Assembly: GCF_000142905.1 (NCBI RefSeq)
Contig: NW_013657660.1
Span: 210,056-274,055 of the forward strand
Reading direction: 5' to 3'
Length of the DNA stretch: 64,000 bases
From: Thecamonas trahens ATCC 50062
Lineage: Eukaryota > Protista > Apusomonadida
Within the stretch, counting starts at the first letter, position 1. Every line of letters begins with the position of its first letter. Shown piece after piece: positions 1-6,375 of this stretch. A model generated the notes under the pieces. It saw nothing but the letters and a program-made list of their open reading frames with translations, ran no database searches and was not told the origin of the DNA. The position numbers were made by a program, and so were the translations under genes.

Positions 1-556
1 GGCCAAACCACTCGTTGTCAGTAAAGAAGGCCTGAGTCGGCGCGTCAGTCGGCGCCGAGGTCATGATGTACCACGGGATGACCACCGATCCGGCGGGCTT
101 GCCGGCCTTAGCCGCGGCAAGCGCCTGGACCTTGGCGATGCGCTCGGCCTGGAGCTGGAAGAGCGACTTGCCCGATGGCGCGCCGATGTCGTAGCATCCC
201 TTGGGCTGCGACGAGCCGAGGCGGGTCCCCTGCCCGCCGGCAAGCAGGACGGCCGCCACCTCGCCGGCAGCCACGGCGTCAAGCCCGCCAGCCCACCACG
301 TGTCGAGCTGGTCCTTGCCCACAGCATCCTCGGCCTCGATAGCATGCAGCGGCGCAATGGCCGACGGATCCGAAAACGTCTCCTCGCACGCCGCCATGGC
401 CCGCGAGTGGAACCGCGCCAGCACATCCAGATCCACCTCGGCCAGCTCGCCCGCCAGCGCTGCCTGCGCCTCACCATCGAGCGTGTCATAGAACCGCAGG
501 ACGTGGGCCTGCCCAGCCGCCTCGAAGCGGGTGCGAAGCTCAGTGATGTCTGCCAT
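1..556 (-). CDS. UAP1: UDP-N-acetylglucosamine pyrophosphorylase (5' part; runs off the window start)
   Basis: Not in the ORF track because no stop lies inside the window. My translation from the ATG at 556 gives MADITELRTRFEAAGQAHVLRFYD...VAAVLLAGGQGTRLGSSQPKGCYDIGAPSGKSLFQLQAERI...IPWYIMTS, which carries the UAP signature LAGGQGTRLG..PKG. Confidence 0.93.
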   Translation of the reverse strand, partial: MADITELRTRFEAAGQAHVLRFYDTLDGEAQAALAGELAEVDLDVLARFHSRAMAACEETFSDPSAIAPLHAIEAEDAVGKDQLDTWWAGGLDAVAAGEVAAVLLAGGQGTRLGSSQPKGCYDIGAPSGKSLFQLQAERIAKVQALAAAKAGKPAGSVVIPWYIMTSAPTDAPTQAFFTDNEWFG

Positions 557-784: not shown

Positions 785-1283
785 CTAGGATGCCGGGCCG
801 ACAAGAGCGGCGACCGTGTCAAACAGAGTCGACGCTTCGATGGGCTTGGAGATGAGGGCATCCATCTGGAGAACAGCCTTGAGCGTCTTGGGCAGGTTGA
901 AGCCATTGACGTCGGCCGAAGTGAAGATGAGCTTGACACCCTTGAGCGCCGGGTTGCAGCGGACAGTGAGGGCGAGGCCAAGGCCCGAGATAGAGTGGAC
1001 AAAGGCGTGATCGCCCATGGCCGGGAACTTTTCGTCGATGCAGAAGAGATCAAAGGCGGCGCCGGTGGCAAGAGCGGCCGAGGCGTCGGGCGGGGCGAGA
1101 GCCCGGACCACGGTGGCGCCAAACGACTCGAACGCGTCCGAGGTGGCGGCCAGTGACGCTTCGTTGGCGTCGGCGACAAGGACGCGGAAGACAGCGCGGC
1201 CCCAGTCGGCGATGGACGGGCCCGATGCCGACGCCGACGCCGAAGTCGGCGCCGCGGTCGACTCTGGCGCTCCGCGGGCCTCG

Positions 1284-1314
<31 letters not shown>

Positions 1315-2435
1315 CAGAGTCTGTGCCCGAGCCCGTGCCAGAGCCAGAGGTGACGGGCGTGACGGCCTTGGAGCCGTGGGCCGAGCTGGGCGCCGAAGAC
1401 GGCGTCGCGGGTTCGGCCAACACCGGCCCGGCCGACGGCAGCGGGACTGTGCCGACATCGTCGACGTCGCGGACAAACTCGTGCTCGAGCAGCTCGTGGA
1501 CTGAGGGGCGCTCGTCCGGGTTGATCATGAGGCAGCGCGAGAGAAAGTCTTGCGCGGCAGGCGAGATGTTGGTGGGGATGGCGACGGGCGTCTCGCGGTC
1601 CCAGTGCCTCACCAACGCCGCAAAGTTCTTGAGGTGCGGGTTGGGCGGCTTGCCCGAGAGCATCTCCAGCACTGTTGCGCCGAACGAGTAGATATCCGAC
1701 TTCATGCCGTAGCCCTTTTCCAGCACCACCTCGGGCGCCATCCACAGCGGGGTGCCCGTCACGGTGCCCGACATGTTCTCGCCCTGCGTCAGCTCTTCGA
1801 TCTCCTTGGAAGCGCCAAAGTCCGAGAGCTTGACAATGCCGTCGTTCGAGACAAGCACGTTGGCGCCCTTGATGTCGCGGTGCAGAATGTTGCACGAGTG
1901 CAGGTACGCGAGCCCCGTGAGGATCTGCCGCGCGTACACCTTCGTCAGGTCCTCCGGGAACGGGCCAAACTTGGAGAGCATTGACTCGACGGACCCGCCG
2001 GGCACATACTCCATAAACACAAACAGCACGTTGTCCTGAAAGTCCGTCCCCAGATACTTGACCACGTGCGGATGGTCGAGCTTGGACAGCAGCCGCACCT
2101 CCTTGATCACGTTGTTCACCCGCGACTTGTGCTCTGAAATGAGAATCTCCTTCACCGCCATCAGCTCGCCCGTATCGAGATGCAACCCGAGATAGACCGA
2201 ACAGAACGCGCCCTGGCCCAGCAAGTTGCCCTTCCGCCACCGGACCTTGGACACCGCCGTGAGGCCTGCAGAGCCCGACGCGCCTGCCGCGGCGGCTGCC
2301 TCGACCCCGCCCGTCTCCTTGGTCTCGTCGTCCTTGGCCTTGCGCTTCGACTTGGACTTGTGCTTGCTCTTCTCCTTCTCGCCATGGTGCTTGCTCTTCT
2401 TATGCTTCCGCTTCTTCTTCTCCTTCTCTTTCTCC
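785..2435 (-). CDS. STE11/MEKK-type MAP kinase kinase kinase with a C-terminal response-regulator receiver (REC) domain; last exon shown, upstream exon uncertain
   Basis: Kinase motifs WRKGNLLGQGAFCSVYLG, TGELMAVKEI, FMEYVPGGS, HRDIKGANVL, DFG and GTPLWMAPEV. The C-terminus reads FRVLVAD...FDLFCIDEKFP...IFTSA...DALISKP. The frame stays open upstream through a Lys-rich stretch to a TAG acceptor near 2436. A GTAAG donor near 2839 may supply exon 1 (ATG about 2960). Confidence 0.88.
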
Positions 2436-2483
2436 TATTTCCCACCGCACACACACACACACACACCAGCCACGCACCACAAC

Positions 2484-2532
2484 GAGTCAGCCACACAGTC
2501 AGCCACACAGTCAGCCACACAGTCAGCCACAC
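2484..2532. repeat. 12-bp tandem repeat (CAGTCAGCCACA, about 4 copies) in a probable intron
   Basis: gagtcagccacacagtcagccacacagtcagccacacagtcagccacac is directly visible, just after an (AC)n run. Confidence 0.85.
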
Positions 2533-3064
2533 CCACCACTGCCGCCCGCCCATAACCGGCTCTGGAGCAACCCCTCCCCTTCCCCTATGCTCCCATCCCA
2601 CCATCCATACTCCTACTCCCCACCATGCCCGCATCCACACCCACTCCCCCCTCCCTCCCACACCCACGCCCTCCCACACCCACGCCCTCCCCCAGCCAAG
2701 CCCAGCCGAGCCCAGCTCCAAAAAAGGCCTCCCAGTCTTCCCGCTGCTCGCCCCCCCCCCCTTACGTTTCCCGCCCCCTTCCTCCCTTGCACCCCCCCCC
2801 CCCCCTCCTCCTGCTCCACTGGCCCATCGAGCACCTTACCATCCTGCTCCTGCTCCTGCCCCTGAGCACCGTTGACGAGAGGTGCTGGCCGTACCCTTTC
2901 CCTGCTCCACACCCGCGCCCGCCTCGGAAGAAGGCCCCGTGCCGATCGATCACTCGGCATGCTGCCAGGCCGACCACTGCCACCACTGCACCACCGCCCC
3001 CACCCCCAACACACACACACACACACACATATATATATTTTATATATACCTCTCTCCCTCTCTC

Positions 3065-4741
3065 ATGGAGGCCTTGCAAACACGCAAGCGCCGCAGGGAG
3101 GAGCTTGGTCCGTCGGCCACGCCGTCAGCAGGCTCGTCGCCCTCGCCACGGACCTCGTCACAGGCCTCGCCCTCGCACCCAGCCGCGGCACGCCCTGTCA
3201 AGCGCGCGTGTCTGCTCCCGCAGTGGAAGCCAGGGTCAGTGGCACGAGCTGCAGTCGCTGCATCACCTCGAGCTACGGCGGCTAAGGTCCGTGTGCTGGT
3301 CGGCGAGGCAGTGGATGAGGTGCTGGCCATTGGCGAGACGGTCGTTCTGCCGGAGACGTCCGCCGGCCGCGGAGCAGCAGGCGCCACGGGCGGGCCGGTC
3401 CTCGGCCTCGCCTGGGCACCGCTGGAACCGGTAGTGGTGGCTGCAGTGGCGCCCGGAGGACTGGATCCGCCGGACGCGCCGATGAGTGCAGCCGCCAGCG
3501 CCGGCGCAGAGCTGCAGCTGTGGCGGGTGGGTGCGGTGAGCGCGAGCGGGGCCGAGAGCCTGGCGTGGGAGGCGACGGTGACGGTCGGCGGTGGCCCTGT
3601 CCGCGTCCTGGCGTTCTGCCCGTGTTCGGCCGGGCCGGGGCGGCTAGGTGTGCTGGCGACGGCGGGGAGCGATGGGCGGGTGAGGTTGTATGTGCTCCCG
3701 ACAGGGCTCACTGGCGAGGCCGCCCTCGAGCCGCTGGTGGAGATTGCGGTCGACGGTGTGGCGTTTACGTGTGTGGCATGGAGCGCGGCGTCGCTGTCAC
3801 TGGCGCTGCTGGCGCTGGGTGGGACGGACGGACGGATCTACGTGTACCAGATTCAGTCACTGTCCGAGGCTGCGGCGGCCGAGCCGCTGGTGGTCCTGCC
3901 CGGGCACGCGCAGGCAGTGATGGACCTCGACTGGGCGCCGCTGCAGTCGCCCGGCCTTGTAGCTGCGCGGTCGTTCCGATCTGGCGCACCGCTCCTAGCG
4001 TCGGCCGGATGGGATGGCGCCGTCAAGGTCTGGTCGCTGGCTGCGCCGCTGGAGGCGGCAGCGGTTGTGCAGCTCTCGTCGGTTCCCATCCGGACCATGC
4101 ACTGGCTTCCTGTGGTCCCGCCCAAGGCGAGCGGGGGCCGGGGGGCGGCAGCGGTGGCCGACGAGAGCATCGCCACGCTGCGGACTCAGATGCGGCTGAA
4201 GGATACATTTCTCTCGGGCGCCGGGCGGCACTTTGTGCCCGGCATGGCGGCGCAGCTGTCCGAGGCCTCGTCGCTGGGAATGGCGTCGCCGCTGCTGGTG
4301 GGCATAGAGAACGGATCCGTTCTCCTTGTTCACCTCGACTTTAGCGCCAAGAACTGGTCGCGCCAGTACAAGCACGATGCCGCTCTTGCCGAGCTGGCGG
4401 TCTCCGACGATGGCCTTGTGATGGCGCTGGCCGACTTTCGTGGGCGGACGGCGACGGTGGCGGGCGCGACGGCCGAGTCGGCCCGCGGCTGCGTCGCACA
4501 TCACGCTATCGCGAGCATTGTCGACACCGCCAGCAACTCTGTCCGCCTCGTCACTGGAGCCGCCGTCGCCCGCCTTTCCGTCCCGCTGCCTCCAACCCCG
4601 ATCTCCGTCGCCGAGTCTGCCAAATCGGTCGCCTTTGCCCCGACAGACCCGGACCAGCTCGGCGAGCCTCTGGCCGGGCACATGCTTGCCTCTGGCCTCG
4701 GTGCTGGCCTTCTTGTCATCCAGTGGCTGGCGCTGCCGTAA
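3065..4741 (+). CDS. GTF3C2: WD40-repeat protein, TFIIIC subunit 2 (GTF3C2/Tfc6)-like
   Basis: GGPVLGLAWAP, LQLWRV, VRVLAFCP..GRLGVLATAGSDGRVRLYVLP, GHAQAVMDLDWAP and LASAGWDGAVKVWSL. The RLGxLAxAxSDG block resembles GTF3C2 as I recall it. The ATG at 3065 follows a low-complexity intergenic stretch. Confidence 0.65.
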   Translation: MEALQTRKRRREELGPSATPSAGSSPSPRTSSQASPSHPAAARPVKRACLLPQWKPGSVARAAVAASPRATAAKVRVLVGEAVDEVLAIGETVVLPETSAGRGAAGATGGPVLGLAWAPLEPVVVAAVAPGGLDPPDAPMSAAASAGAELQLWRVGAVSASGAESLAWEATVTVGGGPVRVLAFCPCSAGPGRLGVLATAGSDGRVRLYVLPTGLTGEAALEPLVEIAVDGVAFTCVAWSAASLSLALLALGGTDGRIYVYQIQSLSEAAAAEPLVVLPGHAQAVMDLDWAPLQSPGLVAARSFRSGAPLLASAGWDGAVKVWSLAAPLEAAAVVQLSSVPIRTMHWLPVVPPKASGGRGAAAVADESIATLRTQMRLKDTFLSGAGRHFVPGMAAQLSEASSLGMASPLLVGIENGSVLLVHLDFSAKNWSRQYKHDAALAELAVSDDGLVMALADFRGRTATVAGATAESARGCVAHHAIASIVDTASNSVRLVTGAAVARLSVPLPPTPISVAESAKSVAFAPTDPDQLGEPLAGHMLASGLGAGLLVIQWLALP

Positions 4742-4939: not shown

Positions 4940-6375
4940 ATGTTCCGGAGCCTCACCTCGACTGCTGCGCCGTCTGTGGCTGCTGCCACCGGCCAGGCCG
5001 CCCGCGGCTTTGCCGCAGCTGCCGCCGCCCGCCTCGACTTTGCTCTCTCCGAGGAGCAGCGGGCGCTGGACGACATGTCCAAGCAGTTTGCCCGCGAGGT
5101 CATCATCCCCGTGGCCGCCGAGCACGACCAGACCGGCGAGTACCCGTGGGAGGTTGTACGTTGGTGAAGGAAGGGGGGAGGGGGAGGGGGGGGGAGGGGG
5201 AGGGGGAGGGGGGGGGGGAGGAGAGGGAGACTCACTCTGCCGAAAACCAATGCGCAAACCGCCTCTGCCTGGCAATAACGCGACACACATATGCACCGCA
5301 CGACCGCTGCGTGTCACAGATCAAGCAGGCGCACGCGCTCGGTCTGATGAACCCGCACATTCCCGAGGCGTACGGCGGGCTTGGGCTCGGCGGCGTCGAG
5401 TCGTGCATCATTGCCGAGAACTTGGCGTACGGGTGCTCCGGCATCGGAACCGCCATCGAGGGCCCGGCGCTGGCCGAGGCGCCGATCATTGTGGGTGCGT
5501 CCGACGAGCAGAAGAAGAAGTACCTCGGCCGGATGACTGAGGAGCCGCTCATTGCCTCGTTTGCGGTGACTGAGCCCGGCGCAGGCTCGGATGTGGCCGG
5601 CGCCAAGACGACTGCGGTGAAGAAGGGTGACGACTGGGTCATCAACGGCTCCAAGATGTGGATCACCGGCGCCGGGCACGCCAACTGGATCTTTGTCCTC
5701 GCCCGTACCGATGCCAACGCCCGGACCGGTGCGGCCTTTACCGGCTTTATTGTCGATGGCGACACGCCTGGTGTCAACGTCGGCCGCAAGGAGGTGAACG
5801 TGGGCCAGCGCGCGTCGGACACCCGCGGCATCACCTTTGAGGACGTTGTCGTGCCTGACGCCAACCGCGTCGGCGCCGAGGGTTACGGCTTCAAGCTCGC
5901 CATGGCCGCCTTTGACATCACCCGCCCCGAGGTTGCATCGGGCGCGGTCGGCCTCGCTGACCGTGCCAAGGACGAGGCGCTTGCGTACTCGCTCGAGCGC
6001 AAGACCTTTGGCACCGAGATCTTCAACCACCAGGACGTCGCCTTCCGCATCGCCGACCTCGAGACCGGCGTCCAGCTCGGTCGCCTCATGGCCCGCCGCG
6101 CTGCCTGGGAGCTCGACCAGGGCCGCCCCTCGACCTACTACGCCTCCATGGCCAAGCGCCACGCCGGTGACCACGCCATGCACGCCGCATGCGAGGCTTG
6201 CTACATCTTTGGTGGCAACGGCTTCAACACCGAGTACCCCGTCGAGAAGCTCATGCGCGACGCCCGCATCTACTCCATCTACGAGGGCACCTCGGGCATC
6301 CAGCGGCTCAACGTCTCGCGCCTCATGCGCCGCGCTTTTGAGGCCGGTGCCAACCCCGGCGGCCCTGATGCCTAA
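4940..6375 (+). CDS. ACADM: Mitochondrial medium-chain acyl-CoA dehydrogenase (2 exons; intron 5156-5319)
   Basis: Transit-like N-terminus, then [30 protein letters not shown]|[25 protein letters not shown] and [29 protein letters not shown]. The GTACGT...CACAG intron joins the two frames cleanly. Confidence 0.93.

Follow-up and report, generated by a model that had tools for sequence, protein, structure and literature searches.

Does the gene at positions 785-2254 on the minus strand join a MAP3K to a two-component receiver, and could such a receiver place the kinase under His-Asp phosphorelay control? The window analysed here is a stretch of 64,000 nucleotides from Thecamonas trahens ATCC 50062 (contig NW_013657660.1, positions 210,056 to 274,055). 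Positions 785-2254 of this window form one continuous open frame of 489 aa, according to the open reading frame list and its translation. The frame has three parts: a MEKK/STE11-type kinase domain, a Ser/Gly-rich linker and a C-terminal CheY-like receiver (REC) domain of 130 aa. A natural fusion of this kind is a Rosetta-stone-style hint of coupling between two-component and MAPK systems outside fungi and plants. It is also a small, single-protein setting in which to study the control of a eukaryotic kinase domain by a receiver fold. The features of the locus are listed in Table 1.

Table 1. Features of the kinase-REC locus in window coordinates
Feature	Position (nt)	Strand	Basis
Stop codon	785..787	-	Translation
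Atypical REC (CheY-like) domain, aa 356-485	800..1189	-	PF00072, AHK4 match, hhalign, AF2, Foldseek, dN/dS
K470-P471, beta5 Lys-Pro	842..847	-	Invariant in 18/18 sequences of alignment A4
T445, beta4 Thr	920..922	-	Invariant in three orthologs; aligned with canonical T/S
Beta3-alpha3 segment with insertion of roughly 9 residues (domain aa 68-93, ORF aa 410-435)	950..1027	-	Ortholog alignment
D407, phosphoacceptor-position Asp, end of beta3	1034..1036	-	Invariant in 18/18 sequences of alignment A4
Beta1 acid pair: D362 kept, A363 in place of second Asp	1166..1171	-	Alignments to AHK4, bacterial hybrid kinases and own-genome RECs
Ser/Gly/Ala/Pro-rich linker, aa 262-355	1190..1471	-	Composition; hexanucleotide repeats
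MEKK/STE11-type protein kinase domain, catalytic motifs intact (ORF aa 8-261)	1472..2233	-	Pfam PF00069, PDB match
Lys/Ser-rich low-complexity N-terminal stretch, in frame with kinase, without ATG	2255..2434	-	Translation; L013 comparison
Putative intron (alternatively 5' non-coding DNA) preceding the K-rich coding stretch	2435..2894	-	TAG at 2437-2435; simple repeats
Candidate first exon (hypothetical): ATG 2960-2958, 22 codons, donor GTACGG 2894-2889	2895..2960	-	Read from sequence
Alternative candidate first exon (hypothetical): one codon, ATG 2842-2840, then GTAAGG		-	Read from sequence

The original prediction described the first part of the protein as a complete STE11/MEKK kinase domain, and this description holds. 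The domain matches Pfam PF00069 (Pkinase) over profile positions 3-263 of 263 (E-value: 1.7e-66). The translation shows a Gly loop, AVK lysine, HRDIKGAN, DFG and an APE-type motif, and hence a complete ePK core. In a PDB sequence search, the closest solved kinase is human MAP3K2 (221 bits, E-value: 1e-64), with STE20-type kinases ranking about 40 bits lower (best 180 bits). The best named homologs are plant and algal ANP/NPK1/MAPKKK proteins, and identity to ANP1/NPK1-like MAP3Ks is 45-50%. By its motifs and best matches, the domain is a catalytically competent MAP3K of the MEKK/STE11 family.

The C-terminal region had been predicted to carry the CheY/REC pattern, and the domain is found at that location with all four marks: VLVADAN in beta1, FCID followed by EKFP in beta3, IFTSA in beta4 and ISKP in beta5. 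A check against PF00072 gives a divided result. The match of the window protein covers profile positions 1-110 of 111 (E-value: 0.0013), and the same span is covered in each of the three orthologs (the window protein and two relatives described below), in which PF00072 is the sole non-kinase Pfam match. The scores (19.3 bits in the window protein, 13.3 and 15.0 in the other two) are all under the gathering threshold of 30.2 bits, which indicates strong divergence of the REC domain. Other comparisons point to the same assignment. The best PDB sequence match of the C-terminus is the receiver of Arabidopsis AHK4, over its full length (phmmer; E-value: 0.0015). An hhalign comparison of the three orthologs with 12 RECs of the same genome gives a probability of 97.2% over 118 columns (E-value: 3.5e-11). 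The identity to own-genome RECs is 14-24%. In a word-indexed search of 5.8 billion sequences, the matches other than orthologs are all RECs of hybrid histidine kinases, the best at 36 bits.

Structure prediction of the C-terminus likewise returns the expected (beta-alpha)5 fold. The AlphaFold (AF2) model has a pLDDT of 88.1 and a pTM of 0.85, with strands and helices in the order b1a1b2a2b3a3b4a4b5a5. Its top Foldseek matches are all receivers (CheY4, MicA, CheY, the ETR1 receiver and DivK; target-normalised TM, TMt, up to 0.84, probability 1.0). Because canonical RECs were part of the alignment given to AF2, the fold and the homology assignment are not entirely separate lines of evidence. Judged by the profile comparisons and the model together, the C-terminus is a genuine REC fold of the hybrid-histidine-kinase type.

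A search for a paralog of the REC in the same genome returned only the gene itself, and a word search with the REC of one relative, P0002, recovered P0002 alone. Patterns drawn from a conserved insertion in the domain gave 549 matches in JGI metagenomes, of which 0 were confirmed. A profile of 416 positions, combining the C-terminal domain with the kinase part of P0002, had a full-length match only to the cluster of P0002 in a representative search. As the profile contains that kinase part, its matches are dominated by kinases; ten multi-stretch matches examined are double-kinase proteins with no REC.

Are the kinase and the REC truly parts of one protein? The two might instead lie on separate genes or transcripts, or the REC might be a look-alike arising by chance in stop-poor, GC-rich DNA. 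With a GC content of 66%, the region has further frames that stay open over about 400-470 aa, and the open linker by itself therefore says little about continuity. The GS-rich linker of the original prediction is indeed present and lies on hexanucleotide repeats, (GCCAGA)11 at 1283-1349 and (CCGACG)5.5 at 1222-1254. Against an artefact, the same order of kinase, linker and REC is found in the same frame in two environmental relatives, P0001 (70% identity; found on five marine metagenome contigs, Tara among them) and P0002 (54% identity). The linker is poorly conserved and varies in length among the orthologs, with the frame always kept. Its dN/dS is 0.44, compared with about 0.25 for the REC, which indicates purifying selection on the REC frame, and 0.07 for the kinase (the kinase being compared with the ortholog contig L013). 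Neither the window nor L013 has a Met in the linker, ahead of beta1, from which a separate REC protein could start. A chance look-alike is further opposed by the hhalign result and by the restriction of non-ortholog matches to RECs. An artefact is thus very improbable, and comparison of the three sequences indicates that the kinase-REC fusion is a single conserved gene.

The active site of the REC is incomplete. D362, D407, T445 and K470 represent four of the five catalytic receiver residues, and these are invariant in the three orthologs. One beta1 acidic residue had been noted as missing (DA for DD), and the alignments identify it as the second Asp. This residue, a Mg2+ ligand, is replaced by A, A and S in the three orthologs. 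All 11 own-genome RECs aligned have [D/E]-D at the acid pair, the second Asp being the more conserved of the two. Substitutions at the equivalent position of CheY (Asp13) almost abolish phosphorylation. A receiver that lacks one of the five catalytic residues is classed as an atypical or pseudo-receiver, and phosphotransfer cannot proceed without the metal that the acid pair binds (PMC8510515). By the five-residue criterion, the loss of this Asp in all three orthologs makes the domain an atypical (pseudo-) receiver, and the loss of a ligand for an essential metal makes phosphoryl transfer to D407 doubtful. Direct phosphorelay control of the kinase is consequently possible rather than shown.

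Two features near the active site set the three orthologs apart from the canonical RECs aligned. The residue following D407 (D+1) is acidic in all three orthologs (E, D and E) and is absent as an acidic position from the canonical RECs aligned; it might partially substitute for the lost metal ligand. The segment between beta3 and alpha3, which contains a His-bearing insertion relative to canonical RECs, is the most conserved part of the domain, with 21/26 positions invariant in the three orthologs as against 33/121 elsewhere. AF2 confidence within this segment falls below 50 at domain residues 73-79. All four of the retained catalytic residues are among the 54/147 invariant positions, an outcome with a probability of about 0.017 by position alone; such conservation statistics are weak because there are only three orthologs.

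These data also bear on whether the REC has any regulatory role. It could be degenerating, or could serve only as a structural tail (for solubility or localisation, for example), with no two-component link and no regulation of the kinase, as its low identity to own-genome RECs, sub-threshold Pfam scores and lost metal ligand would allow. Maintenance of the domain across orthologs of 54-70% identity, under stronger constraint than the linker, makes this improbable, as do the nearly invariant beta3-alpha3 segment and the invariance of the catalytic-site residues.

A tentative alternative with a substantial share of the probability is that the REC is a working phospho-acceptor: HPt~P supplied by hybrid histidine kinases would phosphorylate D407 and toggle the MAP3K in cis, the MAP3K itself thereby being the response regulator. 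The invariance of four of the five catalytic residues, including the acceptor Asp, Thr and Lys-Pro, favours this explanation, as does the acidic D+1 residue. The REC is moreover of the hybrid-histidine-kinase type, which normally exchanges phosphoryl groups with HPt proteins. The original prediction called for a check of the genome for hybrid histidine kinase and HPt genes, and these are present (12 HisKA, 3 HPt and 22 REC matches, together with RegA-like regulators). Control of a MAP3K by a response regulator is also established in trans in yeasts, by Ssk1 on Ssk2/Ssk22 in S. cerevisiae and Mcs4 on Wis4/Win1 in S. pombe, in the work that PMC8510515 and PMC3608495 cite. The replacement of an Asp kept in every canonical REC aligned, at a site whose metal is essential, argues against it, as do Pfam scores far below the cut-off in all three orthologs. 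A phosphorylation switch in cis is plausible, at a minority probability; it is rather unlikely that D407 receives a phosphoryl group from HPt~P in spite of the changed metal site, perhaps aided by the acidic D+1 residue or the His-containing insertion, and so toggles the MEKK.

The preferred model, which as a whole has about an even chance of being correct, is a cis-acting pseudo-receiver module on a competent MEKK/STE11 MAP3K. The REC, flexibly attached through the low-complexity linker, would regulate the kinase in cis as an atypical (pseudo-) receiver. Contacts within the molecule or across a dimer, the docking of a phosphorelay partner (HPt, for example), or both, would determine how active the kinase is, and the conserved beta3-alpha3 insertion beside the active site would be the likeliest contact surface. 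Phosphorylation of the Asp would be absent, or far less efficient than in a canonical receiver. We infer in this model both that the REC regulates the kinase and the route by which it does so, as well as the impairment of phosphotransfer. One observation counts against a pseudo-receiver: the acceptor Asp, Thr and Lys are strictly kept, as would be expected if phosphorylation still matters, whereas many pseudo-receivers let these residues drift, as in the Rim15 RECs of Ascomycetes, in which the acceptor Asp is lost and replaced by Glu, Ala or Gly (PMC8510515).

The protein resembles several known systems and is identical to none of those compared. The original prediction drew a parallel with the yeast HOG pathway, and this stands as an analogy. 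In both cases a MAP3K of the STE11 group, which heads a MAPK cascade, is paired with a receiver, and the input components (hybrid histidine kinase to HPt) are also found in this genome. The receiver and MAP3K are here a single polypeptide, unlike in yeast. The kinase is nearest to MEKK2 and plant ANP/NPK1 rather than to Ssk2/MEKK4, and it lacks the long N-terminal autoinhibitory, Ssk1-binding region of Ssk2, having a short Lys-rich stretch in its place. The REC is nearest to those of hybrid histidine kinases and lacks one metal-binding Asp, unlike Ssk1, which is not among the PDB sequence or fold matches of the domain. Identity with the Ssk1/Ssk2 HOG module was rejected on these grounds (MEKK2/ANP-type kinase, short N-terminus and no Ssk1 match). 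With neither an Ssk2-like kinase nor an Ssk1-like REC, the protein is analogous to the yeast wiring and is not a fused version of it.

Other candidate parallels come from kinases that carry a receiver in the same chain. Rim15 is a fungal kinase of the Greatwall/AGC type with a C-terminal REC that is often atypical and whose role is unstudied (PMC8510515). It shares with the window protein the arrangement of a eukaryotic protein kinase and an atypical C-terminal REC. It differs in that the kinase here is STE11-like, the acceptor Asp is kept and an acid-pair residue is lost instead. Assignment as a Rim15-type kinase-receiver was rejected because the kinase is not of the AGC/Greatwall type. In kinetoplastid DAK (Tb927.9.3120), an ePK domain comes after a receiver-containing cassette that resembles a histidine kinase, and this fusion is conserved across a protist lineage (PMC8519429). 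Like the protein described here, DAK combines a REC fold and an ePK in one chain, as a conserved fusion, and retains the acceptor Asp in a degenerate two-component module (PMC8519429). DAK is a membrane protein in which an entire sensor-DHp-CA-REC cassette is N-terminal to the kinase, whereas the window protein has only a REC, at its C-terminus, and no histidine kinase cassette.

A receiver is also paired with a MAP3K-like kinase in plant ethylene signalling. The receiver-bearing ethylene receptor ETR1 controls CTR1, a Raf-like MAP3K, largely without canonical phosphorelay, and the receiver of ETR1 ranks with the best structural matches of the REC. ETR1 and CTR1 are separate proteins, unlike the fusion, and CTR1 is Raf/TKL-like rather than MEKK-like. 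By language-model features, the ESM-Atlas clusters nearest to P0001 (score 0.91-0.92) are Pkinase + Response_reg proteins of about 865 aa and chlorophyte cNMP_binding + Pkinase + Response_reg proteins, which shows that ePK-REC fusions recur in nature. Compared by their cluster descriptions, the Atlas proteins differ from the window protein in being nearly twice as long and in having a REC that reaches the Pfam threshold in 45-100% of members; their kinase subfamily and taxa are different (cGMP-dependent kinase type) or are not given.

To our knowledge, two routes alone link phosphorelay to MAPK cascades in the eukaryotes studied so far: a separate response regulator binds a MAP3K (yeast HOG), or a Raf-like kinase is held by receptors that carry a receiver (plant ethylene). 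The fusion had been called unfamiliar from model organisms. For ePK-REC fusions as a class this does not apply, since Rim15 (PMC8510515), DAK (PMC8519429) and the Atlas clusters are all examples and the class is not new. It does apply at the level of kinase type: no described MEKK/STE11-REC fusion was found in literature searches, and kinome papers on Phytophthora and Dictyostelium refer to receivers only as parts of histidine kinases or of RegA. With its missing metal ligand, the protein is a useful test case for the function of atypical receivers. If the REC is still phosphorylated, receiver active-site chemistry is wider than supposed; if it is not, the protein exemplifies how a receiver can become a regulator of a kinase that does not depend on phosphorylation of the receiver. 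Should D407 be phosphorylated in a cis switch, a single polypeptide would for the first time join His-Asp relay directly to a MAPK cascade; in a lineage sister to the opisthokonts, this would suggest that control of MAP3Ks by response regulators is perhaps older than the fungi.

The 5' end of the gene lies beyond the open frame. No in-frame ATG precedes the kinase Gly loop and an in-frame TAG is present at 2437-2435, so the start codon must sit in an upstream exon. Only about 60-80 Lys-rich residues are N-terminal to the kinase. Contig L013 has a matching layout, with a stop followed by a K/S-rich open frame that leads into the kinase. The putative intron or 5' non-coding region is filled by simple repeats ((CA)9.5, a 12-mer x4 and a 16-mer x3.2). 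Spliced to the acceptor AG at 2436-2435, either of the hypothetical first exons in Table 1 would give a phase 0 junction. As a separate observation, the neighbouring acyl-CoA dehydrogenase gene has a verified intron with a GTACGT donor and a CAG acceptor.

In this gene a single ORF encodes an active-looking MEKK-type kinase joined via a flexible linker of ~90 residues to a receiver fold under selection. The original prediction described this ORF as a MAP3K, a linker and a CheY-like receiver (REC) domain, and this layout is upheld by Pfam for the kinase and by profile and fold matches for the REC. Judged from the sequence, the stretch from kinase to REC requires no splice. The linker contains no Met in either the window or L013 (the ortholog contig compared with the window DNA), so a separate REC start is impossible. 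GC content in the window is 60-68% (~66% near the gene), spliceosomal introns are present and two other frames overlapping the gene are also open. These long frames are an effect of GC content, and in this genome the length of an ORF does not show that it codes. Because GC content keeps other frames open too, the open frame is weak evidence, and the argument for a fusion rests on homology, cross-species frame conservation and selection.

Features of the MAP3K-REC gene and loci of the RegA-like proteins
Feature	Position	Strand	Details
Single ORF	785-2254	-	489 codons, uninterrupted
Protein kinase domain	aa 8-261		Pfam, complete; E-value: 1.7e-66
Ser/Gly/Ala/Pro-rich linker	aa 262-355		Encoded by hexanucleotide repeats
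Receiver-like C-terminal region	aa 356-485		Stretch flagged by the original prediction
beta3-alpha3 segment of REC	950-1027 (aa 410-435)	-	Insertion of ~9 residues
Overlapping open frames	61-1476; 1050-2240	-	~400-470 aa
Lys/Ser-rich open stretch	2434-2255	-	In frame with kinase; closed 5' by TAG
TAG	2437-2435	-	5' limit of open frame
Candidate first exon A (hypothetical)	ATG 2960-2958 + 21 codons	-	Donor GTACGG at 2894
Candidate first exon B (hypothetical)	ATG 2842-2840	-	GTAAGG immediately after ATG
RegA-like locus L025	G000:C25:104745-105074
RegA-like locus L027	G000:C6:308763-309026
RegA-like locus L030	G000:C53:245529-245828

Kinase, linker and REC lie in one frame in two environmental orthologs, P0001 (70% identity; found on five short marine [Tara] metagenome contigs) and P0002 (54% identity; on a Logan contig, adjoining a PEX11 gene), with linkers that vary in length and sequence. 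Between the window and L013, Nei-Gojobori dN/dS is 0.07 for the kinase, 0.25 for the REC, 0.44 for the linker and 0.42 for the K-rich N-terminus, values that are rough because dS is ~0.8-1.5. An artefact, in which kinase and REC would belong to different genes or transcripts or the REC resemblance would be chance, is highly improbable. No further fusion members were found in word-indexed searches or a JGI metagenome scan, nor in a 1.84-billion representative search whose query profile included a kinase segment; three members make up the sampled family.

All catalytic kinase motifs were found by translation and comparison with PDB sequences. The top solved relative is the kinase domain of human MAP3K2 (MEKK2; E-value: 1e-64, 221 bits), followed by STE20-type kinases and ASK1 (180 bits or less). 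Among the best 120 matches in 5.8 billion clustered proteins, those named are nearly all plant or green-algal ANP1/NPK1/MAPKKK proteins (45-50% identity in the kinase domain), none of which has PF00072. The T. trahens genome (28.7 Mb assembly, 131 contigs) encodes at least eight more STE11-like paralogs (41-47% identity), none with a C-terminal domain of this kind, which is single-copy in the genome. These paralogs sit in frames of 600-1700 aa. The kinome is very large: six-frame translations match the kinase domain at least 140 times (E-value ≤1e-20), on many contigs.

The C-terminal domain is a receiver. The sole non-kinase Pfam match in each of the three orthologs (the window protein, P0001 and P0002) is PF00072, always at profile positions 1-110 of 111 (19.3, 13.3 and 15.0 bits, all under the 30.2-bit cut-off). 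In a phmmer search of all PDB sequences the domain is most similar to the Arabidopsis AHK4 receiver (E-value: 0.0015, full length), then to another histidine-kinase receiver and CheY2. A search with aa 343-488 returns the two orthologs and then exclusively hybrid histidine kinases aligned at their REC (best match 36 bits, E-value: 1.7e-3, in 5.8e9 sequences). Alignment of the three orthologs to 12 canonical own-genome RECs using hhalign gives 97.2% probability (E-value: 3.5e-11, 118 columns). The AlphaFold2 model (pLDDT 88.1, pTM 0.85), built from an 18-row alignment of the orthologs, four bacterial matches and 11 own-genome RECs, has the order b1a1b2a2b3a3b4a4b5a5, and its top Foldseek matches are all receiver domains (CheY4, MicA, CheY, ETR1 receiver, DivK and GacS D1). 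As canonical RECs are among the AlphaFold2 rows, the fold is consistent with the homology call and is not independent proof. The HMMER and structure checks proposed with the original prediction gave a strong Pkinase match, a full-profile, sub-threshold PF00072 match and a receiver fold.

Similarity to bacterial hybrid histidine kinases (P0258-P0262, one named Rhodospirillales) reaches into the segment before beta1 (window 1150-1215 (-)), as an S-I-[AG]-[DE] motif ~ten residues ahead of beta1 (RVLVAD). Their identity to the MAP3K REC is 28-33%, versus 14-24% for own-genome RECs. The REC domain may possibly be of bacterial origin.

Five catalytic landmarks serve as the receiver standard (PMC8510515). 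The acceptor Asp (D407), Thr (T445) and Lys-Pro (K470-P471) are all present, as is the first Asp of the beta1 acid pair (D362). The second is replaced by Ala both in the window protein (Ala363) and in P0001, and by Ser in P0002, so that the DA in place of DD already remarked upon in this gene extends to A/A/S over the three orthologs. The beta1 register is fixed because the beta1 strings of bacterial hybrid kinases are near-identical to this one (VLVADDN vs VLVADAN) and 11/11 own-genome RECs have [D/E]-D. The metal held by this acid pair is essential for phosphotransfer, and receivers missing any of the five residues are termed atypical or pseudo-receivers (~10% in bacteria, ~3% in fungi) (PMC8510515). 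The residue following the acceptor Asp is acidic in 3/3 orthologs (E, D, E) and in no canonical REC aligned. The beta3-alpha3 segment is the most conserved in the REC (21/26 positions invariant in the three orthologs vs 33/121 elsewhere); AlphaFold2 is unsure of the insertion's conformation (pLDDT <50, domain residues 73-79). A REC reduced to a functionless remnant, as the lost Asp might suggest and the selection on the domain does not, is unlikely. The beta3-alpha3 segment holds two His beside the active site.

Matches to 22 PF00072, 12 HisKA and 3 HPt domains in the genome supply the histidine kinases and HPt genes sought, so that a phosphorelay with HPt exists; 11 histidine kinases are published for T. 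trahens (PMC6324907), compared with the 12 HisKA loci counted here. Six REC-bearing frames without a HisKA match were examined for partner domains. Three pair REC with a class I cyclic-nucleotide phosphodiesterase and are RegA-like, one (L029) combines REC with a nucleotidyl cyclase and a CH domain, one has REC and HATPase_c, and one (L028, 478 aa) has REC alone. The recognisable phosphorelay outputs are thus cyclic-nucleotide enzymes, as in Dictyostelium, and MAP3K-REC would be the only kinase output.

We infer that the receiver serves as a module regulating the kinase in cis. Because the metal-ligating Asp is missing in 3/3 orthologs, we lean, at roughly even odds, to an atypical-receiver mechanism. 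The receiver would control the kinase through intramolecular or dimer contacts and/or dock an HPt or hybrid kinase, with Asp phosphorylation absent or merely inefficient; the likely interface would be the conserved insertion, which adjoins the active site. The phosphorelay-to-MAPK switch in cis originally proposed is somewhat doubtful but stays a serious rival, since the acceptor Asp, Thr and Lys are invariant in the orthologs and the genome encodes relay partners; its fusion and relay parts stood, and the absent metal ligand tells against its phosphorylation step. MAP3K-REC would gain interest if phosphotransfer to D407 proved true.

In yeasts, response regulators act on MAP3Ks in trans (Ssk1-Ssk2/22 and Mcs4-Wis4/Win1; cited in PMC8510515 and PMC3608495). 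MAP3K-REC is an analogue of these modules rather than a fused copy: no long regulatory region stands N-terminal to its kinase, which is MEKK2/ANP-like, and its REC is of the hybrid-HK type. Rim15 is also a kinase-REC fusion, but is AGC-type and its REC often lacks the acceptor Asp. Kinetoplastid DAK has its ePK after an HK-like cassette that includes a REC (PMC8519429). Further known fusions, with ePK-like domains, are Dictyostelium DhkG and the fungal group X kinases. The ESM Atlas entries nearest to P0001 by features are two unnamed 865-aa Pkinase + Response_reg clusters and a chlorophyte cNMP-binding + Pkinase + REC cluster. Kinase-REC fusions are therefore already known; this one joins an ePK of MEKK type to an atypical receiver, and no MEKK/STE11-REC fusion was found described in the literature searched.

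No in-frame ATG was found 5' of the kinase Gly loop in the ORF's frame. L013 has the same layout (stop, K/S-rich open frame, kinase), and the 30 residues preceding the first internal Met are coding, as all are identical in the window and L013. Since this open frame lacks a start before the kinase, the start codon would come from an upstream exon. The two candidate first exons are predicted splice joins, both in phase 0 to an acceptor AG at 2436-2435, across DNA rich in simple repeats.

A neighbouring gene at 3065-4738 (+) with WD40/beta-propeller matches is transcribed divergently, its ATG ~100 nt from a MAP3K candidate first exon; given this short gap, the promoter region between the two genes would be shared, bidirectional and very short. 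It contains a TATATA-rich stretch and (AC)n. The downstream neighbour at 1-556 (-) is a UDP-sugar pyrophosphorylase (PF01704; E-value: 2.5e-10) that runs off the window end, leaving its N-terminal part inside. The acyl-CoA dehydrogenase gene at 4940-6375 (+) has a clear intron of ~160 nt with a long G-rich run inside. Its GTACGT donor (near 5160) and CAG acceptor (near 5319) usefully illustrate the splice signals in this neighbourhood.
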